Assembly: GCF_036588685.1 (NCBI RefSeq)
Contig: NC_086382.1
Location: 52,576,001 to 52,640,000 of the forward strand
Source: Mytilus trossulus
Taxonomy: Eukaryota
Direction: 5' to 3'
Length of the DNA stretch: 64,000 nt
The position numbers and the translations under genes are program-made. Shown here in pieces: positions 4,816 through 33,166 of this stretch (the stretch's first letter is position 1; every line of letters begins with the position of its first letter). The notes below the pieces were generated by a model that worked only from the letters and a program-made list of their open reading frames with translations, did not search any database and was not told the origin of the DNA.

Positions 4816-7800
4816 ATGATTTTGTGTTGGGTTCTCGTTTTTCTACAACAAATATGGATAACTACGGGATCAAAAGGAGAGTGAGTATTTTTATTTCTTT
4901 ACCAATCATCATCTCAAAATCTGGAATGAAGATTTTAATATTACTGAAACAACTTTAAAATTAAGAAATAATTCATGGGGGCTTGAATCTATCGTTATTT
5001 TACCACGGGTTGGCCCTTTATGACAAATATTTTACCCTGAGCGATAGCGAGGGGTAAGATATCGGCATAAAGGGACAACCCGTGGTAAAATCTAGATATA
5101 TTCAAGCCCCCATGAATTATTTCGATTCTAATAGGACAAATACGGCATTTTTGTAGATCGAAGCGCTCTAGGTGGAGGCCATTATTTGCCGTTCCCATAC
5201 ATTAACCCTCTTGCTGCCGACCGTTTTTCAAGGTTGCATTTCATATGCCGGAAAATACGACAGCTCAACGTCTGTGACGTAAAATGCCAAACAACGACGT
5301 CATTCGATATATGACGTCACGACATGATGACCACTACATTTGGGACCCATTGGAGAAAAACATAACCCTGTTTAATATTTGGTATTTTATTTGAAAGAGA
5401 TACAGCATTGATGAGAAGATTGCATAAATTTATCCATGGACATATGTGTCCCTCCGGCACTGCCGGTTTGGACATATGTGTCCCTCCGGCAGCAAGAGGG
5501 TTAACGCACTTTTAGATTGGCGTACTCAAAGCGTTTGTAACATTCTAACATGACGTCCTTCAAACGCTTTGAGTACACACCCGTGGTAAAATATGAATAT
5601 ATTGCATTGGCTGTTCCGATCGTACTCCCACGTCATATGTTTTTTTCATGAATGAAGTACACGACGTCATAGAATGATGACGTTATAATTTAAGCATTTT
5701 ACGGGAAAATACACGCTTTTGATACCGAATATCATCACAACAAGGAAACGTAAACAAACGATGCTAAAATGTGGTATAAGCCCATCTTTTATATACATAG
5801 AAGACATATAAGTAAGTTATCATTAAAATTCATCCAAATCTATCTAAATAAGTTTTGTGAATAGTTTGAGCATGTCACTTATTTTGTTTGCTCCGTTCTT
5901 TTACGCCAATTTAAAAGTGCGTTAATTTATGGGAACGGCAAATAATGGCCTCCACCTAGAGCGCTTCGATCTACAAAAAATGCCGTATTTGTCCTATTAG
6001 AATCGAAATAATTCATGGGGGCTTGAATATATCTAGATTTTACCACGGGTTGTCCCTTTATGCCGATATTTTACCCCTCGCTATCGCTCAGGGTAAAATA
6101 TTTGTCATAAAGGGCCAACCCGTGGTAAAATAACGATATATTCAAGCCCCCATGAATTATTTCTTAAATAATATGAAGTGAAGGAAATGTAAAATGCATG
6201 ACTTTGTAAAACCATTAATATGAATTAACTTTTTCTGTTTGATATACCATTACTTTTAAGTTATATTGTGATTTTAGGGTATTGCAAATGAATTTTCCAA
6301 GTATAACAGTAGCTGCACAAGAAAAGGGAAATTTAACAGCTGAGGTAAATACAATACTGCTAGCTTCAGGTAAAACAGTATATATAGTTAAACTTTATAT
6401 TGCTTCATAGATTCTTTCTGAATTTTTAGCCTGACGTCCTTCTTGTATTAGTTTCTAATAAAAAAATTATGCAGTAAGGTTTATTTATATTTAATTGTGT
6501 TTACGTATAAGTCTGTAAATAAAATCTTTGATTTTGTAATTTCAGTCCGGACTAAATGGAGATATCCACATCAATCCAGGAAATGGTACAGGGACTGTCT
6601 ATTTTGAAGGAATCGATTTATTAGAGATAGTGAAGGTATGTGCAGGGTCAAGTTGATGTGTTATCAGTTTTTTTTCTCTTTTTTATGTTTTTCTGTTGTT
6701 GTTTTTTTTTATATCTATATGAAAAACTTTATCACTCAAACATTGTTACAAAGTTTTCAAATAAAGCCTTAATTCTACATGATATCAAAAGTTTCATTCA
6801 GTTTGTGAGTAAATGTACTGTTTGTGCAGAACGTATCTAGTTCGAACTAAATATTTGTCAACGACTTCAAAATTTCTTCAACAATGAAATACCATTACTA
6901 TGAATTACTCATTCCCATTTACTATTTCAGATTGTGTACAGTCTACCGCCAATTTGGATAAACCATTCTCATGTAGGTTTTGTTGGAACGTATGAAGGCG
7001 GTAAAGAGGTCGATATACCGTTGAAAGTCAAGGTTGGCATTTTACTTCATGTTTTTGTTTCTAAAGTGAAAAGTAATGAAATAGCACAGTAAATAGAGTT
7101 ATGAATATTAAGTGTCATATATTTTTCTCCTCCCCCTACCCCGAAAAAAATTACCGCCATCTTCATATTCTTAGAATATATACTGTTTTAATACTAACTG
7201 TATTAAATTGCAATGATATCTTCTTTCAGGAACCATCAGGAGGAAAAATAAGATTTAGCCTTGTCGCTGGAGATTTCCCTCCCGGAATACATCTTGAATC
7301 AGATCGAAGTAGGATATATGGTATAGCACCAGACGTTGATGCTCAGTATAGCTTTACTATACGTGCTACTGGATCTCGGGGGATGTTTGAAGATGCAGTT
7401 TTTAAAATGGAAACTATCGGTGAGGACATGTTTTTTTTCCGGTTTGACAACCAAACATAAAGCATATCACAGCTAGATATTTTTAGTTTTACCATTATTA
7501 TTTTTTGTGGGAAATACATCACAACTTAATAGATTAAGGAAAAACATCATGATGCAGATTAAGCTTGTCGTCTACAAGGTTCCTGGCATAATTTTTTTTC
7601 GTTGTGACAATAAAAACATGAATAACTGGGCTAAATATTTTTAGCTTTTACTATTATCATTTTTCAAGGATTAAGGGAGATGTTGGATATACATCAAGAA
7701 GAAAGGAAACGAAAAACAAAAACAAAAACAAAAACACAGTGAAGATTGTTAGTAGTTGTGGTGGTCTTTTGAAATATATTTTTATTTATTTTCAATGTTT

Positions 7801-10274
7801 AAATTATTCTTTATATTTATTAGGAGAGGTTGAAATATTGTCTATGACAAAATACAAATGTCTCAACAATATTTCAAACTCTTCATATATAGCACGAGGT
7901 TGTGGTAGCTTTTGGATAAAATATTAATAATGTGTATGTTTGCATGCACCAGTTATCTTTATTTAATATATATATTGCTTTTTACAGAGTTGCAGCATTG
8001 TCAATATGAACCTTGTCATAATGGTGCTGTATGTAACGAGACAAATGTCGGTAAAGGATACGAATGCGTGTGTGCCGATTTCTACGGAGGGAAAGATTGC
8101 AGTACAGGTACACTGTACATCACATTCCGTTTACCTTCAATAATATAAAAGTTTTGACATATTTGTCTATCAAACAATGACAAAATCAACCCTCTTAATT
8201 TCATAAATACCCTGTACTCATAACTTGATACCTGTTGTAGCCTTAATATATCCTTATCTATAGAGGTTAGTAGATGTTAGAAGATTTGGTATTAGTGCCA
8301 ATGAGACAACTCTCCATCCAAGAACAATTTTTAAAAAGTAAACCATTGTAGGTCAAAGTACGGCCTTCAACACAGAGCCTTCAAACAAAGTTGTCTCATC
8401 CCGAACAGGAAGCTACAAAGGGTCCCAAAAATCTCTATGTATGTAGTAGAGAATATGATTTTTTTTCTACATCATACTTCTATAAACGTTTTCAAAAATA
8501 GACAAAAACTATCAATTCTACAAATTCAAATAAATTATAAAAGCATTAAGACAATCAAATTAACACATTTGTTCCTGTTGGGTTCATTTCAGATTGTAGA
8601 CAGAGTGAGGTAGGCGTTTCTCTTCCTTCAAAAATCCCAGATGCTCAACTGTCGGCATATCTTTCTCACGAAATGTCAAATGCTACTGAAGCTCGTCTTG
8701 ACAGTGAAGAAAAGGGTTGGTGTGGAGAAAATGCGAATTCCTGGCTTCAGGTCGATCTAGGTAAATATTTTGATCACTTTCATTATTTCAATTACTATTG
8801 TTCTTTTTCATTTTATGAAATATGTTTTGAAATCAATCTTAGAGCAAACAGCACACTTTTAGTTTTTACAAAAATGAAATATTTTGTTTTACTTTTTTCA
8901 GTTGTACATTTGTTTCTTTCATTGAACTTAATGACATTGTTAAGATTTCTTTTTCTGTAGTTTACGTTCAGGTTGCATTTCACCGAATAAAGAGAATACT
9001 ATTTAAATCATATTAACATGTGCAATAATATAAGTAAAGATAAGCATCAATTTAAAACGATGAAAATGATTCTGATTCTTGCATAAGAATTACAACTTAA
9101 TGAAAAATAGTGTCATATATGAAATAAAAAAAAAATATCCTCTTTTCAAAAGTTAAATTTAGAATATTATTACTATGTGAAAACATATATTTTATTTTCC
9201 AGGTAACCGTTCTAAGATAGCTGGTGTTACTATGTTCGGCTACAACACCCAGTATCTGACAGAATCCTTCCAATTATCGGTCAGCACGGACGGTCAACAT
9301 TTTCAATTTATTAAAAATGGGACCTCACCTATCGTAAGCATACATTTTCTTTCAGACTTATGATACTGGGGCTATTCTGTGTTGATTATAGGAATAAACG
9401 CCTTTTAAAAGGGATTTATTGGTGTATAAACTCGAACAATTCACTCACAAACAAATAAAAGTCTATGATGATATGTTAACGTTTACTTAATACACCAATA
9501 AATTCCTTTTAAAAGGCGTTTTATCCTTAGAATTCTAAGTTAGATATAGGGAGTATATTGTTCCACACTCATTACCTCTATCACACGTAAATTGAAGATT
9601 TATGTCATTGAATAGGCCTGGCGCATGACTATACTTGTTGGTTGACGCAAACATATGTACTCAATGAAATTTGCTCTCTGATAAAAAGTTAACTGCCAAA
9701 ACTCTTATTATAATAATTTACTTTCATCTAGAAAATATGTTTGTCAAATATTGTGGATTCTTAAATATTCGTGGTACTCCAATTTTCGTTCATTTTGTGT
9801 TTACCGGTGAACCACGAATTTAAATGTTCAATGAGGCACAAGTGTTCTATATGCTTGTTTGCAGAACTTAATAAAAACACAAAATCAGATATCTACGAAA
9901 ACACAAAGTTTCATCAATTAACGAAAATTGGTACACAGAAAAATAATAAATCCACTGAACTTCATGATAAGTCATGTGTACACATTTATGTTCAGACTGT
10001 TTAATTTGTACATAGTTTTACCATTAAGAGATTGGTAATATTCTTCTGAAAACATTTATATAATTAAGAGATTGGTAATATTCTTCTGAAAACATTTATA
10101 TAATTAAAAAGAACTTTTTTTCATTTTTTTCAGGTTTTCCCCGGTCGATCTGGAAGACTGTATTCTAGCTTACAGGATGTTACTACTGCCAGATTTATTA
10201 GATTTCACCCGTATTCATACAATGCTAAATATGTTCCATGTATGAAAGTTGAACTATACGGATGTGTTTTGTAA
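4816..10274 (+). CDS. Paralog 1: secreted protein, SP + cubilin-NTD-like beta-helix + He_PIG/cadherin-like Ig + EGF + F5/8 type C (357 aa, 9 exons)
   Basis: Manually spliced exons 4816-4880, 6278-6344, 6546-6635, 6931-7032, 7230-7419, 7988-8107, 8593-8760, 9203-9333, 10134-10274. All introns are GT-AG with compatible phases (2,0,0,0,1,1,1,0), giving a 1074-nt open frame. MILCWVLVFLQQIWITTG..; ..NGDIHINPGNGTGTVYF..; LPPIW..GDFPPGIHL..YSFTIRATG..; EGF CQYEPCHNGAVC..YECVC..GGKDC; F5/8C IPDAQLSA..ARLD..GWC..WLQVDLG..ARFIRFHP..CMKVELYGC. Exon sizes match the two paralogs. Confidence 0.9.
4961..6167. mobile_element. Foldback/MITE with ~265-bp terminal inverted repeats, flanked by TTAA, in intron 1 of paralog 1
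   Basis: 4961-5205 plus 5505-5524 is the near-perfect reverse complement of ~5903-6167. Each arm begins with its own ~160-bp imperfect palindrome (4965-5123; 6005-6163). Confidence 0.9.
5206..5500. mobile_element. piggyBac-type non-autonomous element nested in the foldback element
   Basis: TTAA|CCCTCTTGCTGCCG...CGGCAGCAAGAGGG|TTAA: 14-bp TIRs, CCC/GGG ends, TTAA duplication, and a duplicated subterminal GGACATATGTGTCCCTCCGGCA. Confidence 0.9.
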
Positions 10275-11770: not shown

Positions 11771-12725
11771 GATGACGACGGATATTTTGTAACTATCCCG
11801 TCCTGTTTTCATCAAATGTGACCTGCCAAATAAGATTTATTATCGTATTTTTTACTAGATAAGCAACATGACGAAGGTCAAATAAGAAGCAGAATATAAC
11901 TACTATTCCGAAGTACCTGCTAAAACCCCGGGTGTTTTTAGGGTTTGTGTTGTTCAGTCTTTGGTTTGCATTGTGTTTTTTGTGTACTCCCTGTTTTTGT
12001 CGATTTTCGTTGTTTACAATTTCTGAGTTTTAATGCCATTTTGGTTTGGAATTATCGCCTCTTTTTTAAAGACCTAAATATTAATGAGATATCTGCTACT
12101 CGATTTTGATCAAATAACACAATACTACATTGTATGCATTTTTGAAAAAAAAACAAGGAAAAAACTCTTTTAGAATCATCATGGTATAGATAAGCGTTTA
12201 CAATTAATGATGTTCCTACGGATATTTTTTATCCCTGTGTTCGTATGGAATGGTTTTTTTTACATATTTTATCTCACGATGAAGAAGAAACATTGTCATG
12301 TCACAAATTAAGAATGAATTTGGTGCAAATAGATAAAAGTACGACCTACAACACGGAGCCATGGCTCACAACAAACAGCAAGCTATAAAGGGCCCCAAAA
12401 TGACTAGTGTAAGACAATTCAAACAGAAAATCCAATGGTCGAATCTATATAAAAAAAAAGAAAAATGAAAAAGCCTTATGAATCACATCAACAAACAACC
12501 ACAGGTTTCTGACTCAGAACCGGTGTAAACAAAAACAGCTGATTTTAACATTTTCACAAACGCCAACATTCACTCTAGTGATTGTAGTGTAGCATTGCAA
12601 CATAAAAAAGACACACAAATTGTTTTCAGTTTTAAGATAAACACTGGTTTGAAAAATTAACAAAATCAAAGACATGATAACTAAATGTTAATGATTCATT
12701 TATTAAACAAATTCAACATAAACTG

Positions 12726-15700
12726 TTAATTGACAATTTCACATCCATACACTTCCACTCGCATTCCTGGTTTGGTTTGATATGTTCTTGGTATGAACCG
12801 GATATATCTGGCCGTAACCGGCTGAAGAAATGCATGTTTTATTACACTGTTCACACTGCTACTGCCAGTAAATTCCTGTAAAAAGGAAAATGCAAGTAAA
12901 TTGTCAAATAATACAAAACAATTATTTAACTGGTAGATTCTGTATTCTTGTATTATGAATATATTTATTTAAAAAAAATGGATAGTCTTGTATACAACTT
13001 TCAAAATTTACCCCGAAAACCATAGTCAGGTGGTGATTGAAGGGGTATTGTAAAATCCTGACTATTGAAAAACAAATAAAAGAAAAAAGAAAAAAAAAGT
13101 ATTTAACTGGTGTACGCTCGGATAGTCATTTAGAAAGAACCTATTATATTACGGAGTAGTATTAATAACAACAGTATTATATTTACAAATTGTTTATTAT
13201 GTATATAATTAGAATCAATCACTTAGGGAAAGAACGAACACCTTTAAAATTAAACAAAAACCTCAGCAAAAATACAACATGAAAGTGTATTGTAGTTAAC
13301 AATTATTTTTTTTCTTCAAATCGCTAAAACTATCAGGTCGACTTCACATGCATTAACATATAAAGAAATGTATGTGTGTTATGGGTAATAACAGAAGCAC
13401 TATGTTTACCATTGCAGATGTTCCATTGACAACATTGGTAAAGGTATTTCCATCAACACTGTACTGTACCCTGAAGGTCTTGATGTAGCTTGACGATGAC
13501 TGACCTTGGGTTGCTACTCCATAAACAGATGTAGGATGACCTATGTCAACCTGTAATTTTAAAGTTTTGTTTTATTGGCAAGTTTTATGTAGAAATAACT
13601 GAGCACTAAAATGAAATGAATATGAAGAAACTTTCATTTTCGAGAATCTGCTATTTTCTACATGTACGATCATTAAAATATTTGATGAATAAGTTATACT
13701 AGCCTGTAACCAAGAGCCTGTATTGGTACCAGACCAGCCACGTGGGTTGTTTAGTCTTCCATCAGAAGCAGGGTGATCTCCTGAAGCGTAATGGGAAGAC
13801 AGCTGAGCATCTGGTATGGTCTTAACGCCGTTATCTACACCGACAGCTTTACTTCTACAATCTGTACAAAAAATATTGATGTCAATTTTTTGGTTTTTGC
13901 TGGGAAATTTGATTAACAGATAATAACTTTTAAAGAAATTTAGTATAAACCCTATTTGTAAAAAGAAAAATCACAAAAATACTGAACTTGCAGGAAAATC
14001 AATTCGGAAAGTCCATAATAACATGGCAAAATCGAATAACAAAACACATAAAAAACGAATGGATAAGAACTGTCATATTCCTGACTTGGTACAGGCATTT
14101 TCAAATGTAGAAAATGGCGGGTTAAACCTGGTTTTATAGCGCTAACCATCTACTTTTAAGTTTTAATATAATTAGATGTGCGATTAATAAAACAAGGATC
14201 CTGATCATACACTTGGAAGTTTTCAAAGTTGATATCCTTATGACCACTAATATATATAAATATTAAAATAAAACGTACCAAACTGACATGATGATCCACC
14301 ATAAGGATTTGTACAGTTACACTTATAATCATCTATAGCATCTTCACATTTTCCATTGTACTGACAGGGATTACTATTGCACTGGTTCTTCTCTGAAAAT
14401 ATAACAAGATTCGGTATTCTTACTAGCATCATACAGAATTGAGTTTAACACTTGTAGAATCCCATTTAGCGCATATTATTTTATTTGCAATTCATGAGAC
14501 TCTAAATACGTTCATAAGAGTAGTTTCCTCTAACAGCCTTTTCATAACATCATCAAACAGTTGCCAGTCGTAAAAAAAATTACATATTAATCAGTATGCG
14601 TAATCAAGTAAACCAACAACAAGTGATACACTAAAAAGGGTCTTTAAACAACATGCTCTTTGTCAATTTTTTTTTATCAAAATATAGCGGAAACAAAAAT
14701 GACGAATTGCATAATATGAACTTAAAGAAATGTTATGTTTAAAATATTCTTCTAAAATCTTATCAGTAAACAGAACTATGACACCATTTTGCAAATTCTG
14801 TATGGAAAATCGAGTTAAAAAAGCCAAATACTATTATAACGTAGGACAATCAAAAATATTCTACACGGAAGGGACAAAATTTTACATGTTCCCGCGTATG
14901 ATCAAAACAGTATACCCCTTGTGTCGATTGAAAAGATCTGATCAGCATATTTGCCATGAGCGTCAGTAACACGAATGCCAAACTCGTACGTTGCATCTAC
15001 ATCCGGTGCATTTCCAGTTAATCGACCTGTAGTCTTGTCAAGGTGTACACCTGGAGGGAAAGCTCCAGATACTTTCTCAAATCTCATTTTGCCACCTTCG
15101 GGATCCTGTAAAGATATTGAATCGATAAACATAGTAATACGGCGACCAAATAATATATGATAACTTGAATTCGAACATTGAAATTAAAATATTTAAAATT
15201 TTGAGGTAATTAAAAAAATTCAGTACTACATTTTAAAATGTAAATAAAAATTGTGAATGGAAATGGGGAATGTGTCAAAGAGACAACAACAAAGACTGTT
15301 ACCCTGTTTATCAGTTCTTTTGATCCCTTCGTAAACGAATATATTTCCAATCTTTATTATGATATTTACGTTTCTGTTCAAGTTTTATAACTGAATACAA
15401 GTAATAATTAATAATAATATATAAAAAAAATCTTTATCCAGAATCCACTTTTATAAATGTTACAATTGTTCATTCGGAGAACTAAGTGCCCAATGCTTAC
15501 AATTGCTTCTAACAATAAGTTGACTGACTGTCCTCCGGCAAACACTCCAAGACTGCCATGTGCTGAGTTAACCTTCCATGTCGGTGGTAAACTGTTAACT
15601 ATCTACAAAGAATATATATAGTAAGTTTTTTAACTATTCTTATGAGAGCGTTGTAATATTTTTCAAAATGTGTATGTCATTGTTACAAATATCATTTTAA

Positions 15701-17515
15701 CATGACTAGAAATGACGTTGTTGTCCATTCGTTGGACCAAAATGTATGTTGTTAAATTCACAGAACACTCAAAATGAGGTCTACAATCAATGTGTTGTGG
15801 CCTTACCCTCATTTGACTTTAAAACGTTTAAATAACCCACGGCTAAGCTTTTGTCTAAGCTAGGTTCACATAATAAACGAAGCAATAAGACTTCTAGGCC
15901 AAAGGAACCATACTTCCCGTTTTTAACTTTCGTCGGAGTTCAGTATTTTCGTGAATTTACTTTTTGCACAAACATCTTTTTTTATAAAAGTGTAAATAAG
16001 TTATGATTCATGATTCGCCGACATGATATAATATATGGCTTGTTATAACAAATTGTTAGGTGTTGGTTTGATCAATTCGGTCCACTTTTCTGTAATAAAA
16101 ATTAAAATGTGCTTCTTTTTTGGAAGAATTGAAAAAGAAAAAAAGAACATGTATGAGGGTCCGACCAGATAATGTGCAGCATATGCTTTTCTGTTATAGT
16201 TTCTCAAATAACTATACCTCAAATAATTTAAGCATATCTGTATGTCCAATGTAAACAGTGCCATTTCCATTTGGCTTCATAAAGATGTTGCCTTGCTGAG
16301 GTCCTGCCTTCAAAATTAGAAAAGACTATAGTGCAAATGTACGTGAATGATATGTCATAACAATAGCATATTTGTAATCGCTCTTTGGTCATTACTCTAT
16401 GTCTTTTCCAAATGAAACATTAACAGAATAGCCTAGTCGGACAGTTCGTCGTCTTAATCTTATTACATTTTTTTTGGTATTAATGTATGCTAAAAATTCC
16501 CTTAGCCATCAATGATTTCCCTTTTAATATGACAATATGAAAAAAACTATCAAATTTTACTCAGACATGTTAGGCATCTTTTAGACAATAGTAGGTAAGC
16601 AGTTACTTAAATTGTATTGAATATGTTTAATACTTTGTAACGTTATTACCTGTATTGTAAGATTGCCTCCCTTTTCTGCTGTAATGTACACATTAGGATA
16701 TTGTATGTCAAAGAAACTGAAAATAAAAAGGATAAACAGAAAGTTATACTCAATTTTTGAAGATTAAACTAATGAAATGAACGTTATAACAAAAACAAAT
16801 AAACATATACAAAAAATGAAAATGTATAATACAGTGCAAGGTATGAATGAATAAACATTAAATAAAAAAAATTACGAAAAAAGAGACACAAAGGATACCA
16901 AATGGATATTCGACCTCATAATAGGAAAACAAAGGATATGGATTATTTATCCATGATATAAAATCAGTACATGCTCAACAAAAAAAACCACAAAAGTCGA
17001 AAAATAGAATTCCAACGCAATTGCAAAAAAACAAACAAAAGTAAAAAAAAAAAACACGCACAAACTAACAACAGTACATAGTACACGAAACACAACACAG
17101 CGAACCAAAAGAATGAGCAAGATGAACCCCAGTTAAAACGTGAGGCAATCTTAAATGTTCCAAAAGGGTAACCACTGTTGAGAGAGATTTGACAATAAAA
17201 AAGTCAAATAAAAAAAAAAACGTACACACTAATCCATTTTGTGCGCTCTACAAAACCGGTCTCTATAAATTGTTTTATTCACATTCACTAAAGACAAATA
17301 TGAGAAATCTATAATCAAATTAAAACAAATTATTTAATTCAGATTTTTTAAATTTAAAATTGTCGATTTACCATCAATGAATATATAAAAGCATCTGTAT
17401 GTTATGTATGCCTTGTTAATATTTTTATAAAATATTGTTATATTATAAAAAGTTCTTACCTCGCATAAATTGTCAAGAAGCATGAAGATAATATCAAAAC
17501 GCTGGTGGTAGCCAT
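12726..17515 (-). CDS. Paralog 2: same architecture (355 aa, 9 exons; intron 7 predicted GC-AG)
   Basis: Minus-strand exons 17515-17460, 16716-16650, 16307-16218, 15602-15501, 15105-14916, 14392-14279, 13861-13704, 13550-13410, 12875-12726; 1068-nt open frame. MATTSVLILSSCFLTIYA.., YPNVYITAEKGGNLTIQAGPQQGNIFMKPNGNGTVYIG, LPPTWKVNSAHGSLGVFAGGQSV..AIDPEG..SGAFPPGVHLDKTTGRLTG..YEFGIRVTDAHGKYADQIFSI, EGF CNSNPCQYNGKC, F5/8C WLQVDIG..GVATQG..ARYIRFIP..MRVEVYGC. AATAAA on the minus strand at 12704-12699. Confidence 0.9.
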
Positions 17516-17841
17516 TTTTTGTGATTTTGGCAATATATGTCTAACTAACGTTTAGATATCAGTAATTCATAAACTGTTGTTATCTAAGAAACCAAACTAT
17601 GGTATATTACGATAGTGCATCTGAGCTAAAAATAGGGACGACGTAGGAAAACGACCAGTAATAAATAACTTCGATAAGATTTGAAAAATAATGAAGCAGC
17701 AACCCAATAAGACTAATATAATGAGCACAAATAAAATATTAACCCAATAATAAAAGGCATCAAAATTACTTTATAAGAGTATGACAGGTCACCCAAATTT
17801 TATAGATTGATTTCTTGTTTGTTTAAAGTAATTTCTTTGTC

Positions 17842-20800
17842 AGCTTTATCGTGGTGGTCAGTTTTTTTAATTAATGGAGAAGCTTTATCTTGGTGGTCAG
17901 CTTTTTTTTATTAATGGAAAAGCTTTATCGTGTTAGGCAGGTTTTTTTTATTAATGGAGAAGCTTTATCGTGGTGGTCAGGTTTTTTTATTAATGGAGAA
18001 GCTTTATCGTGGTGGTCACTTTTTTTTTTTTATTATTAATGGAGAAGCTTTATCGTGGTGGTCAGTTTTTTTATTAATGGAGAAGCTTTATCGTGGTGGT
18101 CAGTTTTTTTTTTATTATTAATGGAGAAGCTTTATCGTGGTGGTCACTTTTTTTTTTATTATTAATGGAAAAGCTTTATTGTGATGGTCAGTTTTTTTTA
18201 TTAATTGAGAAGCTTTATCGTGGTGGTCACTTTTTTTTATTAATGGAGAAGCTTTATCGTGATGGTCAGTTTTTTTTTATTAATGGAGAAGCTTTATCGT
18301 GGTGGTCAGTTTTTTTATTAATGGAGAAGCTTAATCGTGGTGGTCAGTTTTTTTCTTAATGGAGAAGCTTTATCGTGGTGGTCAGGTTTTTTTTTGTCTT
18401 AATGGAGAAGCTTTATCGTGGTGGTCCGTTCTTTTTTTTTAATTGAGAAGCTTTATCGTGGTGGTAATTTTTTTTTATTAATGGAGAAGCTTTATCGTGG
18501 TGGTCAGTTTTTTTTTTTATTAATGGAGAAGCTTTATCTTGGTGGTCAGCCTTTTTTATAAATGGAGAAGCTTTATCGTGGTGGTCAGTTTTTTTATTAA
18601 TGGAGAAGCTTAATCGTGGTGGTCAGTTTTTTTTTTATTAATGGAGAAGCTTTATCGTGGTGGTCAGTTTTTTTTATTAATGGAGAAGCTTTATCGTGGT
18701 GGTCACTTTTTTTTATTATTATTAATGGAGAAGCTTTATCGTGGTGGTCAGGTTTTTTTTTTAATAATGGAGAAGCTTTATCGTGGTGGTCAGTTTTTTT
18801 ATTCATGGAGAAGCTTTATCGTGGTGGTAAGGTTTTTTATTAATGTAGAAGCTTTATCGTGGTGGTCAGTTTTTTTTATTAATGGAGAAGCTTTATCGTG
18901 GTGGTCAGTTTTTTTATTAATGGAGAAGCTTTATCGTGGTGGTCAGTTTTTTTTATTAATGGAGAAGCTTTATCGTGGTGGTCAGTTTTTTTATTAATGG
19001 AGAAGCTTTATCGTGGTGGTCAGTTTTTTTATTAATGGAGAAGCTTTATCGTGGTGGTCAGGTTTTTTATTAATTGAGAAGCTTTATCGTGGTGGTCATT
19101 TTTTTTATTAATGGAGAAGCTTTATCGTGGTGGTCATTTTTTTATTAATGGAGAAGCTTTATCGTGGTGGTCAGTTTTTTTTATTAATGGAGAAGTTTAT
19201 CGTGGTGGTCAGTTTTTTTTATTAATGAAGAAGCTTTATCGTGGTGGTCAGTTTTTTTATTAATTGAGAAGCTTTATCGTGGTGGTCAGTTTTTTTATTA
19301 ATGGAGAAGCTTTATCGTGGTGGTCAGGTTTTTTATTAATGGGGAAGCTTTATCGTGGTGGTCAGTTTTTTTATTAATGGAGAAGCTTTATCGGGGTGGT
19401 CAGGTTTTTTATTAATGGAGAAGCTTTATCGTGGTGGTCAGTTTTTTTTTATTAATGTAGAAGCTTTATCGTGGTGGTCAGTTTTTTGTTATTAATGGAG
19501 AAGCTTTATCGTGGTGGTCAGTTTTTTTATTAATGGAGAAGCTTTATCGTGGTGGTAAGGTTTTTTATTAATGTAGAAGCTTTATCGTGGTGGTCAGGTT
19601 TTTTTATTAATGGAGAAGCTTTATCGTGGTGGTCAGTTTTTTTATTAATGGAGAAGCTTTATCGTGGTGGTCAGGTTTTTTTTATTAATGGAGAAGCTTT
19701 ATCGTGGTGGTCAGTTTTTTTATTAATGGAGAAGCTTTATCGTGGTGGTAAGGTTTTTTATTAATGTAGAAGCTTTATCGTGGTGGTCAGTTTTTTTTTA
19801 TTAATGGAGAAGCTTTATCGTGGTGGTCAGTTTTTTTTTATTAATAGAGAAGCTTTATCGTGGTGGTCAGTTTTTTTATTAATGGAGAAGCTTTATCGTG
19901 GTGGTCAGGTTTTTTATTAATGGGGAAGCTTTATCGTGGTGGTCAGTTTTTTTATTAATGGAGAAGCTTTATCGTGGTAGTCAGTTTTTTTTCTTATTAA
20001 TGGAGAAGCTTTACCGTGGTGGTCAGTTTTTTTTTATTAACGGAGAAGCTTTATCGTGATGGTCAGGTTTTTTATTAATGGAGAAGCTTTATTGTGGTGG
20101 TCAGGTTTTTTATTAATGGAGAAGCTTTATCTTGGTGGTCAGTTTTTTTTATTAATGGAGAAGCTTTATCGTGGTGGTCAGTTTTTTTAGTAATGGAGAA
20201 GCTTTATCGTGGTGGTCACTTTTTTATTAATGGAGAAGCTTAATCGTGGTGGTCAGTTTTTTTAGTAATGGAGAAGCTTTATCGTGGTGGTCACTTTTTT
20301 ATTAATGGAGAAGCTTTATCGTGGTGGTCAGTTTTTTATTAATGGAGAAGCTTAATCGTGGTGGTAAGTTTTTTTATTAATGGAAAAGCTTTATCGTGGT
20401 GGTCAGTTTTTTTATTAATGGAGAAGCTTTATCGTGGTGGTCAGTTTTTTTATTAATGGAGAAGCTTTATCGTGGTGGTCAGTTTTTTTATTAATGGAGA
20501 AGCTTTATCGTGGTGGTCAGTTTTTTTTATTAATGAAGAAGCTTTATCGTGGTGGTCAGTTTTTTTTTTATTAATGGAGAAGCTTTATCGTGGTGATCAG
20601 TTTTTTATTAATGGAGAAGCTTTATCGGGGTGGTCAGGTTTTTTTATTAATGGAGAAGCTTTATCGTGATGGTCAGTTTTTTTTATTAATGGAGAAGCTT
20701 TATCGTGGTGGTCAGTTTTTTTATTAATGGAGAAGCTTTATCGTGGTGGTCAGTTTTTTTTATTAATGGAGAAGCTTAACGTGGTGGTCAGGTTTTTTTT

Positions 20801-21276
20801 ATTAATGGAGAAGCTTTATCGTGGTGGTCAGATTTTTATTAATGGAGAAGCTTTATCGTGGTGGTCAGTTTTTTTATTAATGGAGAAGCTTTATCGTGGT
20901 GGTCAGGTTTTTTTATTAATGGAGAAGCTTTATTGTGGTGGTTAGTTTTTTTTCTTATTAATGGAGAAGCTTTATCGTGGTGGTCAGTTTTTTTATTGAT
21001 GGAGAAGCTTTATCGTGGTGGTCAGGTTTTTTATTAATGGAGAAGCTTTATCGTGGTGGTCAGTTTCTTATTAATGGAGAAGCTTTATCGTGGTGGTCAG
21101 TTTTTTTTATTAATGAAGAAGCTTTATCGTGGTGGTCAGGTTTTTTTATTAATGGAGAAGCTTTATTGTGGTGGTCAGTTTTTTTATTAATGGAGAAGCT
21201 TTATCGTGGTGGTCAGTTTTTTTATTAATGGAGAAGCTTTATTGTGGTGGTCATTTGTTTTTATTAATGGAGAAGC
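17842..21276 (+). repeat. Tandem satellite, ~36-42 bp unit (AGCTTTATCGTGGTGGTCAG-Tn-ATTAATGGAGA), roughly 90 copies
   Basis: Directly visible. Unit length varies through the poly-T tract, and most monomers carry a HindIII site (AAGCTT). Copy number is estimated as length/38. Confidence 0.97.
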
Positions 21277-22884: not shown

Positions 22885-25800
22885 ATGGCTGCCAAGATGG
22901 CGCTTGTTGTTCTGTTTGGATTTTCTCTTGTTTCCATTATTTCATCACAAACTAATTTTGAGTAAGTAACTAATTATATTTAACGTTGAAGCCAGTCATC
23001 TGGATTGCATTGTTTGCCCCATTTAAAAATACGGCTCATTTTACAATCAATCTTCCGCAAAGTAAAAATACCCCCGTTCGTTGACAGATTGTGTTGCTCA
23101 GCCTTAAGTTTTATATGTTGTGTTTTGTATACTGGTCTGTAAATTAGTCAGAAAAAAATCATTTCGACTAACCGTCAAGTTAACTTTATTGTAATATTTT
23201 TTGTGAAATATTATATTCTAATTTCGTTCTCTATGGTATTGCAATAATCGAGTCCTCTATTTACGTCAATGGTATAACGATTTTTGCGCTTCAATGAACA
23301 TGTGTATTACATCCGAAAGTGTCTTTGTTTCTGTTTTATGAACAGGATATATATATATATATATATATAGAAATAATAAAAGATGTGGTATGATTGCCAA
23401 TAAGACTACTATCTACTCCCCACATGAGACCATAATGTCATAAAAAAATAACAACCAAAAGGGGACTTCAACAATGAGTAACATTCAAACCATATACTCT
23501 TCTTTAAAAGGAAAAATATAAGCACAAAGATGTATATTTTTCAATTCAAACGAGAAAACTATATATTTTTCTAGATGTATTAAGTGGCAATTGCCCTTTG
23601 CCTTTATATGCAATATACGGAACAATAATTTTATACTTTTCAGTCCAATGCTAGTGACTCCACCTCATGTTTTAGTCCATGCCGCTACTTCTGGTGATTT
23701 TACTATGAAGGTACATGTTTGTGTTATATTTCATTTGTACATGCAATGTATTCTATGTCTGAAAACTGGCGAAGTTGGACTTTTTGCTTATAACTTGATA
23801 ACTTGTAATAAGGCTATGAACGTTTAAATTTAATATCGATTTTGCCAAAGAGACAACACCATCGACGACACAAAATGTTCAAAAGACATGTACAGATAAA
23901 AAGAACGTCTAAATGGACCATTATGTAGACAATCACAATGTATGTGTTAAAGTTTATATGTAGTAAGATCTCTAGGCCCCTTTCCTCTTTTATATTGATT
24001 AGTGAAATAACAAAGCTTAAGGAAAAGTTGTACATAAACTTAGTACAAATAATGCACATACAATAACGGTATAATAATACATAAGTACAAACAAAACAAT
24101 AATGGTCATGTCTAGCATATATATTATATACACTACGTCTTGTTTGATGATACGGGAATGAGAAAAATACGTTCAAGATTACAGACTATTTACTTTAAAA
24201 CTGCATCTGTATATACTCATATAGCCATTAAGTTATTTTATTAATTGTAGAGTAATAATGGAGATATAAAGATTGGATACAATGAAACCGGCAAAGTCAT
24301 CTTTGATAATGAAGACTTAAATTATATAATACAGGTATATCATTAGATTGCCATATTTGTATCGTCAATGCAGTGCATTTTATTTTTTGTTTTGAGAAAT
24401 TAAAGAAATATACGAAAGCCTTTTAGAGCCATGTTAATTTACTTTTTGATATTATTAGCACAGTTTTGCTCTACGAGGGTATTACAACATTAAATGCAAT
24501 TGAACAATGTTATAACACATACAAAATTTGTCAATTTGGAACGAATGCGCTGCTGTGTTTTATGAGAAACAGGAAGAAAAAACAAATAAACAAATCTTGA
24601 AAAAATCGATTTTCATTTCATTTCATTTTAGCTGATTCTTAGTCAACCTCCCGTATGGGAAGAACATTCTCCGTTTGGATATATTGGAGAATTTCACGCA
24701 GGGGACAAAATAGATGTAAACGTCATAGCTAAGGTATACATTATGTGAATAGTATGTATAATAACTCTTATTTTCAATCATATATTATAGGATCACTGGA
24801 GGCTGCATGTTTGAAAGGCAAATACATTTTGGGTCATTATATGCAATCAAAATCATAACTTAAACAGAGTTTGAACGCATTCTAGGGAATATACTTGTAT
24901 GGAGGGTGCAATACAAATGTTTAGCAATTGACTCCGATTTGTTAAAATCAATTGCAGTGAGACGATTAACATCAATTGAAAAAAAAAATCTTTTCCTCTG
25001 AAAATACATGACAGAATCATTGTTTTTAAACTTAATGGCATTATTATCTGTTCGACTCAAAATTTATAAAATCGTACAGGCACATGAGTGGTTATCATGG
25101 TGTCTAGACAAAACTGCATTGAAAAAAAAAAGCAAATCTTAATTTAGCAATCGTAATTTCAGGATTGTATCATATAAATGTAATTATTTGAAATGACCGT
25201 TTGAACAATTTTAGATTTTTTCAAAATGTGCTTCGATCCAAGCTTTTACACTTCAATACACTTACATAAGGAACCATTAAATCTCAAGTACAAAACTATG
25301 CAACTAAGAAGCGAATTCAAATATATTAATTTGTCTTTGTAAATTCGATATATAGATGCTAGTCTAGTTAAAATTATGTCGTCACAGGACCCGGAAGGAC
25401 AACCAATAGTGTATGGTATTGTAGCCGGAATGTTGCCACCTGGAGTAAAACTAGAACCTGATTCCGGTCGAATACATGGACTAATTCCCGATTCTGATGC
25501 CACTTACACGATAACTATTAGAGCTACAGATATACATGGTCATTTTGCTGATAGTGTATTCAAAATTGTTACCCGTGGTAAGCATATTTCACTAATGGAA
25601 ATATAGAGGAATTATTAAATTTTTCTGTGCATTTTTGTTCTGAACTACTTAATTTTTTTCAAAGACATGCTTTTCAAAATATGCTTAATTATTAAAAACG
25701 GACTTATCGAACATTGATTCCAAATAAGTACATTAAATAACAAATCAAAATCAATCATGCCTTATCATCATTTATTCTTTCTTACTTAGGAATAATATAT

Positions 25801-28800
25801 TGCACAAAGAAACCTTGTGTTAATCAAGGCGTTTGTCTAGATGAAACTACAGGATACAAGTGTTACTGTCCAAATCCATATGGTGGTCTTAGATGTGAAA
25901 TTGGTACGTATCAAAATAACCTTAATAATAGGCCAAAAATCTCTCATTCTTTCAAATAAAAAAAAACACAATTAAATTTAATAAGAGACTCTCAACAAAC
26001 TGAATCGACAACCTGTTATTTACTATTGAAACAAAAGACACATTCATAAATTAGTGACAAATCATCATTAAAGGGCAATAGCTCCGTAATTATATCAAGT
26101 GGTGTCGGTCATATAGACAATTTTGAAGAGCTTCTATTGCTCCAACTTTTCATTTTACAGTTTCTATCTATAAAAGGGAGAAGGTTTGGTACCGTTTAAA
26201 CGTTTAATCCCGCTGCAAATGTTTGCACCTGTCATAAGTCAGGAATCTGATTTACAGTAGTTGTCGTTTGTTTATGTAATTTATACGTGTTTCTCGTTTT
26301 TTTATATAGATTAGACCGTTGGTTTTCCCGGTTGTTTTACACTAGTAATTTTGGGGCCTTTATAGCTTGTTGTTCGGTGTGAGCTAATGCTCCGTGCTGA
26401 AGGCCGTAAATTGACCTATAATGGTTTACTTTTTTAAATTGTTATTTGGATGGAGAGTTGTCTGATTGGCACTCACACCACATCTTTCAAAACAGTTTCC
26501 AAGATAATATTCCAAAGACATGAAAAATTTTCTATTCAAAACATGCCATTTATAGGCAATAACTCATATAAGGAGTGATCCGATCTAGGAAAGGAGGTAG
26601 GTCATGCATTCTGACCATTTTCGCCCTGTTATAATTTCTCCAAAAGGTTGGGTTTTTTTAATTAGACAATTTCAATTGATTTAGCCTTCTGGTTTATTTT
26701 AGTCATGGCACCCTTGTTTGTTTGATGGCAGGAACAAAAACTTATTTTAAATATCATAAAACTCATGCAGTTAAAATTAAGTTAAAATTGGCTAAGGTCA
26801 CGTTACAGTAAATAACTGTCACAGATTTTGATAAAGCTTTAGCTCGTGGAACTATAATTTAAAAACGAAAATAGAATACGTCTATCTCTTGTATTATCTT
26901 AAACATCAAAATAGCGTCATATCAACTGTAAAAAAGCACATAAAACCTACAAAACATGTTCCTAAATTTATGTAAAAATCATGAAATACATTACGATAGG
27001 ATCACCAATTTCGAGTTCGTGGTTACGCTATACATAATTAAAAGTGGTGTTCTGTGTGAAAAGTGTACCACAAAACATCGCAAAAAGTGTCACGCTACAT
27101 AAAAACGTCGTTGTGTGGTTTTTTTCACTACCAAATAGGTAACAGATTGGTTAAATGACCAAAAGGAAGTAGGAAATTATTATTCCTTGGCCTAAGTGGT
27201 TTCAGAAGAGATAAGTTTTTTTAAACGTTTACGACGACTACAGAGGACGGACGGACTTTAAGTAATTGCAATAGCTCAACAAGACCCAGATGAACTTTAA
27301 AGCAAACAATAGCTCGCAAAGAGCCATGAACTTAAAAACAAGGGAAAAAAAGCAAATCAGCAAATATAAGCTCTCAATTTTAAATAATAAATTTCAAATA
27401 TAGTCAATATAGCTTAATTAATATACAATTTATCATTTTAACAAATTGTCTCCATATAAGACTGTAGCAGTAACAATCTTATTGGACCATCAAATGCCAA
27501 AGCTATACCTGATGCCAGTTTAACAGGATATAATATGTACAGTTCAAATGTGGCGAAGGATGCAAGATGGAATGCAGGTGGATGGTACGGGGAGGATTCA
27601 ACATCTTATTTACAAGTAGATTTAGGTTGGTTAAATAAATATTAAGAAACAATTGCTATGCATTTTATGTTGGTACCACCACGAATCTAAAATTGACTCT
27701 TTATCATTTAAAGATACAATTTCTAGTCATTTATTGCGTATACTTTTTTCGCAAGGTACACTAGACAATTGTTCTATTGAGTAAAGCCATTTGACTTTTA
27801 GGCCATTTTGTGATCTATCATTACTTGCTATCTTTGTCATTTGAATGTGGTGGATCATTGCCAATGAGACAACTCTACTACCCAAGAGACCAAATGACAC
27901 AGAAATTAACAACTAAAGGTCAGAGTACAGATGACAACAACAGAACCACAGACTCCTGAATTGGGACATACGTTCGACTCTTGTGAAGAGTTGTCTCATT
28001 GGCAATACGCCACATCTTTGTTTTATACAAACATACATACACACATACAGAGTAGGCTGGGGTTATACATGTAAGTGGAATTCCAAACCACCTCTAACTT
28101 GGGACAGTAATAGCACTAGATAAGAACGACCTATAAAAATCAGGTGATGAAGGCTTAACTCATCAGATGAATACAAATAGAAAAAAAAAATCTTAAAAAA
28201 ACAGGGTTTACGCGGCCGGGTACTTGTACATCCCAACAACAGAAATAAATTAAGTACAGATCTGATGGTACTCACATTTACTGACAGAAGTTTCAAAACT
28301 AAACACAACTTATTTAAAAAGCATGTTTCTAAAATCTGAATCACAATATTGATAAAAGGTGCACTAGCTACGAGATATATAAATGATCTTTGAAATTCTA
28401 CTGTTAATGCCAAATTAGAGTTTTAATCCAATTTTCCACATGGCAAAAAAACTAAAGATCAGAGTACAGATGACAAGGACACATTCTTGTTTTTTTGTTC
28501 AATCATTAATGAAAGTGAAATAGCCAGTATGGTTTAATTTTGCCAAACTAAGCTAATAAATGTAGATGATGAATGATTCACTAGCACAATTATTATTTTT
28601 TCGCCTATATTGCATATGTTTGTTTTTGTGTGGAAATATACTGTTGATATAAGTATATATATATATTTAAATGAAGTTAGCGAAAATGTTTGTATTTCCT
28701 TATCTCACACCTTGTTCTGAAAACATCGACATTCATTTGATAAAAAAAAATAACTATACTTTAGTGCTGGGAGTACATACCAAAAAGAGTTCGGTGTTTT

Positions 28801-30658
28801 CCTGAATATCCCACTTTGTGAAATTACAGGTAAAAAATAATTTTGGGGGACAATTGGGAAGTTTGAATGTGGGACAATTGGAAAATGTAATGCCCCATTT
28901 ATGAGCATAATGTTTTCTGGTCTGTCCCGTCTAACGTTTGTTCGTCCGTCTGTCCCGTTTCAGGTTAAAGTTTTTGTTCGATGTAATTTTTGATGAAGTT
29001 GGAGTCCAATCAACTTGAAACTTGGTTCACATGTTCCCTATAATATGATCTTTCTAATTCTACTGCCAAATTTGAGATTTCCCCCCATTTTCACGATATA
29101 CTGAACATGAAAAAGGATAGTGCGGATGAGGCATCCGTGTACTGGGGACACAATCTTGTGTTGGTGGCGATTAATTTGTTTTATAGTGTGTTGTAGTTAT
29201 TTAAAGGTTACTAATCAATGTAACTTATCAAATATGGAGAAAAAAAACATGAACATATCTTATTTTGCACATAGTAGGTAAAACTGAAGTATCATCAAAC
29301 ATGGAAATTAATATGAAGTTATAACATTTTAGTCTTAGATAGATATTTGTTTTCATTTAGTTTTTATTGGCTTTGAACGAGCTGTTAGTAACTGCGGATA
29401 TACAGTAGACTATGACAACAAGTATATTTCAGAATTAATTTGTTTATGAGTTGCTACATTGTACATGTAAGAGGTCAAACACTTATGACCATGTGTACAT
29501 ATTTCAAATATAGATTTCAATTTGCTAATGCAATTCACCATAGGCAAAAATCAGAATACTCAGCTATCAACGGCTACTATTGTATCTTTATTTTAGAATA
29601 CAATAATTTTACTTTTAGGAAATGTATCTCATATAGACAATTTTCAAATCAAAGCTCGAAGTTCCAGCCCTTCAGCATATAATACTGGGAGTTTCTACAT
29701 ACAACATAGCATTGATGGAAACATATTCCATAATTACACATCAAGTTCCAACGGAAATGTATTTGTAAGTGATTAATTTAAGGTGTAAGGGTTTTTCATT
29801 CAGTAACACGAATACACGTTAAACGTATTCTTCCAGAGCACCTGATATCATCTCAAGTTTTTGGTGGGGTTCTCGATGCTCGGTCTATAGTTTTATATAT
29901 GTGTTTTGTATACTATTGTTTGTCTGGTTGTTTTGGTGTTTTTTAGAAATGGCGTTGTTATATTATTTTCGCCTTGTGAGTGTGAATGTCACTCTTGTAT
30001 CTTAAGCTTCTCTTCAAACTAAGAAGGCAGGCATCAGTCTCCCCTCGGCGTTATAAATGAGCAAAGGTCAAAACTACATGCATTTTCTTAGTAAGCTCAT
30101 AAAGTAGTGTAACAAATCCAGATTACTGGAAAAGAGAGTTTATATGATCGGCTGTTCTCATTAGGATCCTCATTTAGTCTATATCTGGATTTTATTTTTT
30201 GAGGCAAGAACGTTCTTATGAACGTCAATACGGAAAATCGTTTAACGAATTAACTTCAGAAACTGATATTTTCGTTTACATAGGTATCATGTTACGGATG
30301 TATTGTAATTAAACTGTGATTCGTAAATGATAAATATGCATAATGGTAATATAAATCTTGAATAGGAACAAAAGTAGATGTCAAAACTATAAAGCTTTAT
30401 GCAAATACTTTTTTATTGCATTTAGCTGATATGATCATAAAGTCATCCATACCATTCGTATTTTTTGTATAGAATTAGACAATTAATTCTGCATGTATTT
30501 TGCAGACTTTCTCTGGTACCACGTCTAGCAGTGCTCACAAAGTCAATCTACCCGAACCGTTAGATACCAGATTCATCAGATTCTTCACCCTGACGTGGCA
30601 TCACAGTTACAAACCGTACATGAATATGGAAATTCATGGCTGTCACAATAACTCATAA
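22885..30658 (+). CDS. Paralog 3: same architecture (365 aa, 9 exons)
   Basis: Exons 22885-22961, 23644-23710, 24251-24334, 24632-24733, 25388-25577, 25790-25903, 27461-27625, 29619-29764, 30506-30658; all GT-AG; 1098-nt open frame. MAAKMALVVLFGFSLVSIISS.., NNGDIKIGYNETGKVIFDNEDL, QPPVW..DPEGQPIVYGIVAGMLPPGVKL..TITIRATDIHG, EGF CTKKPCVNQGVC, F5/8C IPDASLTG..YLQVDLG..TRFIRF..MNMEIHGC. AATAAA at 30669-30674. Confidence 0.9.
28888..29160 (+). mobile_element. Probable Helentron-associated (DINE/HINE-like) non-autonomous element
   Basis: ATGCCCCATTTATG start, a GTCC/GTCT-type microsatellite near the 5' end, and a short hairpin followed by CACA.TCTTGT at the 3' end. The class assignment is by general structure only. 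Confidence 0.45.
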
Positions 30659-32441: not shown

Positions 32442-33166
32442 AAGGCGACCACTTTTGTTTTTGTTTTTGTTTTGGTGGAGATGAGGGTATGAAGATTTAT
32501 AGTTATATTTGATTATTTTGCTTGATATTGTGAGGGGAATAAGAGGTGTAAATTAGTGATACAGCAACTTAAGAGCAAAATGAAATTAAAACGAAATCTT
32601 GGGCTTAGTACAAGATTTCCGAAGAGTCTTCTAAATTGACCCCAGTCTACAAAAGTTTGTACAAAATTTTTTTTAAATACAAAACTAGGTAATTAACACT
32701 AAACTTGTACAAATCTCGATTTATTTATAACGATATAAATAAAGAAAAAAGTAAAAACACAAAAATACCGAACTCCGAGGAAAATTCAAAAAGGAAAATC
32801 CAAAATCAAAAGTCCAAACATCAAACACATCAAACGAATGGATAACAACTGTCATATTCCTGACTTGGTACAGGCATTTTACAGAAAATACTGCAATCAT
32901 TATTAAGTTTACTTGGAAGTTACAGTGGTCTTCTTCTATACTGGATATACTTCAGATTGTCTATCAAAACCTTTTATTCCATATTCCGATATCTTATCAG
33001 AAAGTTGAATTAGTACTTATAGAACAGGTGAAAATTCATGAAGTAGTAAATAAACACAATATGGAGATAATAAGATTGAGATTGATAGAGATGGAAATAA
33101 TATAATTTGAAAATAAGAACGATAAATAATAAACGCATATACGAAGTGCACGCCATATTTACAGTA

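Follow-up and report, generated by a model that had tools for sequence, protein, structure and literature searches.

A conserved N-terminal module in a secreted Ig-EGF-discoidin protein family of molluscs, with sequence patterns reminiscent of phage tail-fibre repeats and of cubilin

A 64,000-nucleotide stretch of the Mytilus trossulus genome (RefSeq assembly GCF_036588685.1, contig NC_086382.1, positions 52,576,001 to 52,640,000; hereafter the window) carries three paralogous genes, here called P1, P2, and P3, whose secreted products open with a segment of about 55 amino acids. We found that this segment is a conserved, expressed, and family-specific module without a Pfam description, placed at the N-terminus of a secreted mollusc protein family with immunoglobulin-like (Ig-like), EGF, and discoidin domains. 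In P2 it is encoded by two small exons (A and B) of a spliced and transcribed gene that together span 16218-16716 on the minus strand. An earlier note on this DNA had read the corresponding peptides in all three genes and likened them both to the trimerising N-terminal domain of cubilin and to repeats of phage structural proteins; the peptides are in the window exactly as given there, each split over two exons, and the two resemblances fared differently, as described below.

The N-terminal module and its protein family

The family has a single domain order, namely a signal peptide, the N-terminal segment of ca. 55 residues, a He_PIG Ig-like domain, one EGF, and one discoidin domain. Among the exons of the window, Pfam identified He_PIG, EGF, and F5/8 type C domains, all of them downstream of exons A and B, and in the five full-length database members examined EGF and discoidin were found in all five and He_PIG in four. 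The exception, P0078, was recovered with an Ig profile built from the family, which matched all five. No Pfam family was assigned to the segment itself, either in the first ca. 75 residues of the five full-length members (E ≤ 1), in the partial member P0172 (E ≤ 10), or when exons A and B were scanned singly. A PHROGs scan of P0024 gave no match, and the ESM Atlas search with residues 20-78 of this protein gave scores of ≤0.81, to be taken as leads only. A narrow search of the literature on Mytilus lactadherin-like proteins and on mollusc discoidin/He_PIG proteins found no description of the module.

Natural spliced proteins of the family were collected with a nine-row exon-B profile run against 1.84 billion representatives, together with a word search. 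They come from several Mytilus species, Mactra, Mya, Mizuhopecten, and Solemya among the bivalves, and from the chiton Liolophura, and are named in the databases as MFGE8, EDIL3-like, lactadherin-like, or “uncharacterized.” The word search with region 20-78 of P0024 retrieved seven named P2-type members, and the one with the He_PIG ORF (open reading frame) gave exon-sized ORF fragments only. The defining features of lactadherin, MFGE8, and EDIL3 are an EGF with an RGD motif and two discoidin domains at the C-terminus; there are two discoidin domains in mammalian lactadherin, and three EGF and two discoidin domains in EDIL3. The mollusc proteins are likewise secreted and carry EGF followed by a C-terminal discoidin domain, but they have one copy of each, lack RGD (absent from all 12 members examined), and add the He_PIG Ig-like domain and the N-terminal module. 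The firm gain is thus an unannotated conserved domain and a corrected domain content for proteins now named “lactadherin-like.”

Read as a pattern, the segment consists of four short stretches of alternating hydrophobic residues spaced ca. 10 to 11 residues apart, with Gly/Asn/Asp turns between them, and ends in ca. 12 amphipathic residues that lead directly into the Ig domain. In P2, in L010, and in 11 database members its beginning lies one residue beyond the predicted signal peptide (cleavage judged by eye). In 12 of 12 aligned members, an N-x-T/S sequon (G-N-x-T/S) is present at the first Gly-Asn turn. When P0168 was compared with five P2-type orthologues from other bivalve genera, the segment was 66 to 71% identical, the Ig domain 62 to 69%, the EGF 39 to 50%, and the discoidin domain 46 to 52%. 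Among P2-type orthologues, the segment is no less constrained than the best-kept domain of the protein.

Expression of the module was examined in P2 using contigs from four public sequencing runs (polyA RNA by the record of one, RNA by guess for the other three) over positions 12700-17400 of the window, whose DNA is AT-rich and eukaryotic (GC ca. 0.32). The contigs skip exactly the predicted introns, with joints at 16649/16306, 16218/15602, 15500/15104, 14918/14394, 14279/13861, 13703/13549, and 13409/12874, and the six dominant joints have CT..AC ends, that is, GT..AG on the minus strand. As the joint 16218/15602 indicates, splicing connects exon B directly with the first Ig exon, and no coiled-coil or other exon comes between them. 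Upstream, a loose end of the RNA contig past 16718 is compatible with exon 1, which runs from the ATG at 17515 to a donor gt after 17460, encodes the hydrophobic signal peptide, and leaves its final two bases to a split codon. At the other end of the gene, the discoidin domain is distributed over exons 13703-13861, 13409-13549, and 12726-12874, the last holding the stop codon. The database proteins P0168 and P0175 correspond to this joined reading. P0175, listed by NCBI as “lactadherin-like [Mytilus trossulus],” is identical to P2 at 18 of 18 residues in exon 1 and 34 of 34 in exon C, which identifies P2 as its gene.

Some gene models of the family depart from this layout. In P0171 (Mytilus coruscus) exon A leads directly, and in frame, into the Ig exon without exon B, and the model of P0176 (Mytilus edulis) begins at a Met within exon B; mistaken annotation may account for both, or else the skipping of an exon with loss of half the N-terminal module. 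In P0113 (Solemya velum, 477 amino acids) the discoidin match ends at profile position 82 of 127 and is followed by an acidic, repetitive C-terminal extension of ca. 170 residues.

Resemblance to phage tail-fibre repeats

At a cutoff of E ≤ 0.001, the exon-B profile gave 145 matches among the 1.84 billion representatives, comprising 23 family members or fragments, the metagenomic protein P0131, and 121 repeat proteins with 2 to 19 matched stretches each, the period being 37 or 59 residues in most cases. PHROG and Pfam scans took in the 86 shortest of these repeat proteins. Common PHROG matches were phrog_677 (37 proteins), annotated as baseplate wedge tail fiber connector, phrog_31104 (35), and phrog_15769 (24), and several tail-fiber PHROGs were also found. 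Peptidase_S74, a chaperone domain typically found in trimeric fibres, occurs in two of the 86; Pfam had no family for the repeat unit itself. What the phage unit and exon B have in common is a pattern of two consecutive rungs, G-x-I/L-T-I ... N-G-D/N-I-x-L-x-P-N-G-x-G-x-V-x-I. The two groups differ in that the phage proteins hold 3 to 19 tandem units, while the full-length mollusc members have one copy each.

A phage-unit profile built from 121 units, one per repeat protein, was then compared with the 2,160 ORFs of the window. Exon B of P1, P2, and P3 took the top three places with 27.9, 26.8, and 26.6 bits (E 3.5e-7 for P2 among these ORFs), and the next ORF scored 5.6 bits. The resemblance to phage structural repeats that the earlier note had pointed out is thus borne out at the level of a motif, and at that level it is stronger than the likeness to cubilin. 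Upstream of exon B the correspondence continues in part, since a whole-segment profile built from the database family proteins gave matches that, for 65 of 122 repeat proteins, reached into the part encoded by exon A, and in an offset scan of the exon-A part upstream of the phage units the in-register position was the best of the non-self offsets.

The additional metagenomic protein (P0131/P0170, 188 amino acids) is secreted and has two segment-like units, then a heptad-like helix, and at the C-terminus a part rich in Cys; it had no Pfam match above threshold.

A possible oligomerisation module

From these sequence patterns, we tentatively favour the view that the segment is an oligomerisation module, most likely a trimerising one. 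The strands of the module and of its partner chains would stack on one another, as in phage fibre units or the N-terminus of cubilin, and the resulting oligomer would be a multivalent discoidin (sugar- or lipid-binding) protein, in which trimerising could bring a gain in avidity analogous to that of other secreted recognition proteins. Were the module to trimerise, the members of the “lactadherin-like” mollusc family would be trivalent recognition proteins of the discoidin type, assembled on a beta module like that of fibres, and the segment would provide a compact natural trimerisation tag of ca. 55 residues. A shared architecture may underlie the likeness to phage tail-fibre units and to cubilin; common descent is established for neither.

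Several observations weigh against oligomerisation. The helix after the strands has only ca. 12 residues and no coiled coil after it. The low library E values of the repeat proteins arise because near-identical repeats were summed: the best single phage unit scored 23.5 bits, corresponding to E of about 2 library-wide (scaled from 35.0 bits = E 8.3e-4), and the scores of the phage-unit profile on exon B of P1 to P3 (E ca. 1e-7 within the window) scale to E of ca. 0.3 to 0.8 library-wide. The phage family had been chosen by its likeness to exon B, so that the reverse comparison with the window ORFs is not independent of the first. For the exon-A part upstream of the phage units, the mean of the in-register score was negative (−3.5). 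Among solved structures, the best matches of exon B were designed beta-trefoils and beta-propellers, and the phage-unit profile also matched a designed beta-trefoil (E 0.0017) by way of three repeats, indicating that a motif of strands and Gly-Asn turns is not specific to one fold. A sequence search of the phage unit against solved structures found none that was related.

In a different explanation, the segment would be a monomeric, glycosylated meander of beta-hairpins that caps or extends the Ig domain, and the likenesses to phage and cubilin would be convergent on the common strand and Gly-Asn-turn pattern. The short distance to the Ig domain, the sequon conserved in the first turn, the matches of the same motif type to trefoil and propeller designs, and the fact that no link to trimeric proteins is significant on its own would all be expected of such an extension. 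It fits less well with a segment whose conservation in orthologues equals or exceeds that of the Ig domain, with a separation of exon B from other ORFs (27 versus 5.6 bits) that exceeds the usual result for a loose pattern, and with the nature of the non-family matches, all 86 of those scanned belonging to the repeat class and the common PHROGs being phage structural ones. We regard the monomeric extension as possible, if doubtful.

Comparison with cubilin and amnionless

The structure of human cubilin residues 36-135 with amnionless is available as PDB 6GJE (PMC6283879). According to the same account, the cubilin beta-helix is followed by a trimeric coiled coil of ca. 45 residues that extends to about residue 131, residues 42-49 form the interface with amnionless, the core residues of cubilin are conserved from insects to man, and the cubilin-amnionless assembly has already been likened to phage tailspikes and to the type VI secretion spike. 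The stretch of human cubilin that the earlier note had cited, including the ten residues aligned with P3, agrees with the alignment to chain 6gje_B as printed by the search tool.

We located the mussel cubilin gene at G000:C2:51307798-51427584 (plus strand) by more than 30 CUB exon matches on C2. It comprises an N-terminal exon (L014, 7797-7924), two coiled-coil-like exons, EGF exons, and the run of more than 30 CUB exon matches. An ORF in the 40 kb upstream of the CUB run matched the PDB chain 6gje_B, “Cubilin” (E 7.7e-4), which confirms the N-terminal exon and also shows that this chain was present in the PDB copy searched. A single amnionless locus was found in the genome (G000:C3:14715664-14719617, minus strand).

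The segment of the mollusc family and the N-terminal domain of cubilin have several features in common. Both form the mature N-terminus of a secreted protein, with an exon that follows the signal-peptide exon and opens with a single base of a split codon; both show four short strands of alternating hydrophobicity with Gly/Asn turns ca. 10 residues apart, at the same rung spacing, and an acidic D-L motif at the start of the helix; and both have EGF further on. They differ in that the mollusc segment lacks the long coiled coil and is followed directly by the Ig-like domain, has a first strand three residues longer, and is split by an extra intron, and in that the mollusc proteins have one EGF instead of EGF repeats and no CUB domains (none found by Pfam in the five full-length members).

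These features would be accounted for if the segment were a true homologue of the cubilin N-terminus, forming an intertwined three-chain beta-helix that docks on the beta-helix of amnionless or a similar partner and tethers a trimeric discoidin protein to the membrane. With a segment profile built from 11 database members, the cubilin exon came first among the 1,302 six-frame ORFs of the 40-kb 5′ region of cubilin, with 8.3 bits and an E value that, even within so small a search, was 0.11. Scored alone, the cubilin exon and a mytilid fragment, P0169, reached 10.0 and 11.3 bits (analytic per-sequence E of 2.5e-5 and 1e-5), scores that were attained by 37 and 14 of 50,000 composition-preserving shuffles, respectively (p 3-7e-4). 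A profile comparison of the cubilin pair with the full-length family alignment, made with hhalign, selected the same N-terminal segment of the family, over 40 columns (P 0.0052), with a probability of 6.9%. The rung spacing is equal in the printed alignments, and an amnionless gene and a core conserved from insects to man (PMC6283879) are likewise in keeping with homology.

Against it, five PDB searches (with exon B, three exon-wise profiles, and the partial P0172) gave no cubilin chain at E ≤ 10 even though 6gje_B was present, and there was no cubilin among the 145 library matches of the exon-B profile. In the reverse direction, the cubilin profile failed to single out the family: in the window it placed exon B of P3 fifth (E 4.5) and P1 eleventh and did not list P2, and in its own genome it recovered cubilin only and no family exons. 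This profile consists of two near-identical mytilid sequences, since a word search with the cubilin exon gave one fragment (P0169), and the test is consequently underpowered both ways. Moreover, the idea of a cubilin relationship arose from a wide choice of possible look-alikes, so that p values of ca. 1e-3 to 1e-5 in a directed test do not establish homology. Considering also the absence of the ca. 45-residue coiled coil and of CUB domains and the longer first strand, we consider descent from a common ancestor with the cubilin domain unlikely. As a pattern the proposed cubilin likeness is real, if weak, and consists in the rung spacing, the position at the mature N-terminus, and the first rank among the 1,302 ORFs.

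The earlier note had gone further and suggested that these proteins could link the cubilin domain to phage triple beta-helices. The phage unit matched neither the cubilin exon nor its region, so that the family joins phage and cubilin through one weak leg only. It seems very unlikely that the module is a single-copy relative of both the phage fibre unit and the cubilin N-terminus and, as an intertwined three-chain beta-helix, docks end-to-end on a beta-helix partner such as amnionless. If it were, it would constitute a second animal use of a cubam-type assembly and a sequence-level bridge from an animal receptor domain to phage fibres, and a real link to cubilin would open the docking of cubam-type beta-helices to study in a second, much smaller protein.

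Highly doubtful, too, is the proposal that the segment descends from one phage tail-fibre repeat unit taken up by an ancestral mollusc, possibly with an adjoining prokaryote-type He_PIG domain, a claim about origin that is compatible with the oligomerisation reading: the ca. 27 bits of the phage-unit profile on all of P1 to P3, the finding of the family only in molluscs, and the frequency of He_PIG in bacteria and phages would agree with it, but no single unit scores significantly against the whole library, the introns of the gene are ordinary and its composition is host-like, a 30-residue Gly/Asn-rich motif could arise by convergence, and a He_PIG-like domain in one of the 121 repeat proteins (P0064), ca. 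170 residues from the nearest unit rather than adjoining it, lends little support to a joint uptake of unit and Ig domain.

Paralogues and gene layout

P1, P2, and P3 are paralogues with identical intron positions, and their exons A and B all have AG/GT borders (Table 1). In all three, exon A has 67 bases (22 codons preceded by a single base of a split codon), and the junction of exons A and B is in phase 0; exon B measures 90 bases in P1 and P2 and 84 in P3 and is in phase 0 at both ends. The three genes belong to a tandem cluster of at least five paralogues with a common exon pattern, the two further ones (L008 and L009, in opposite orientations) lying at G000:C10:52565757-52573494, 4 to 9 kb before the start of the window. 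The same head-to-head neighbours recur on a metagenome contig (L012) from another species. In a search of the mussel's own genome (1.3-Gb assembly), a three-row exon-B profile had matches at E ≤ 10 in the five paralogues of the cluster only, and the exon-B sequence alone recovered only itself.

Table 1. Positions, in window coordinates, of the exons and domain-coding regions of P1, P2, and P3.
Feature	Position	Strand	Basis
P1 exon A	6278..6344	+	AG/GT borders
P1 exon B	6546..6635	+	AG/GT borders; phage-unit profile 27.9 bits
P1 remaining exons (Ig, EGF, discoidin)	6922..10271	+	tblastn match limits, Pfam; splice sites unchecked
P2 discoidin (F5/8 type C) domain, three exons	12726..13861	-	Pfam PF00754; RNA joints 13703/13549 and 13409/12874
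P2 EGF exon	14279..14393	-	Pfam PF00008, E 9.5e-7; RNA joints
P2 exon D (second half of He_PIG Ig-like domain)	14917..15104	-	Pfam PF05345, E 3.8e-9; RNA joints
P2 exon C (first half of He_PIG Ig-like domain)	15500..15602	-	RNA joints 16218/15602 and 15500/15104
P2 exon B (30 residues, phase 0 at both ends; phage-unit-like part and short amphipathic end)	16218..16307	-	Borders; RNA joints; phage-unit profile
P2 exon A (leading base and first 22 residues of the N-terminal segment; conserved G-N-x-T/S turn)	16650..16716	-	Borders; RNA joint 16306/16649 in four runs
P2 exon 1, coding part (start codon and signal peptide)	17460..17515	-	Sequence read; identity with P0175
P3 exon A	23644..23710	+	AG/GT borders
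P3 exon B (28 residues)	24251..24334	+	AG/GT borders; phage-unit profile 26.6 bits
P3 remaining exons (Ig, EGF, discoidin)	24626..30646	+	tblastn match limits, Pfam; splice sites unchecked

Two introns of P2 (13956-14269 and 15212-15368) contain short repeat fragments with many loose ends of contigs, and similar ORFs are found near 1068-1229 and 32739-32903. Their summed contig depth reaches the thousands in three of the four runs, as for a dispersed, widely transcribed piece of a mobile element that lies outside the gene proper. Between P2 and P3, at ca. 17800-21000, there is also a long tandem repeat with a very strong GC skew of 0.52 and 0.32 (2-kb bins) and repeated open frames on both strands.

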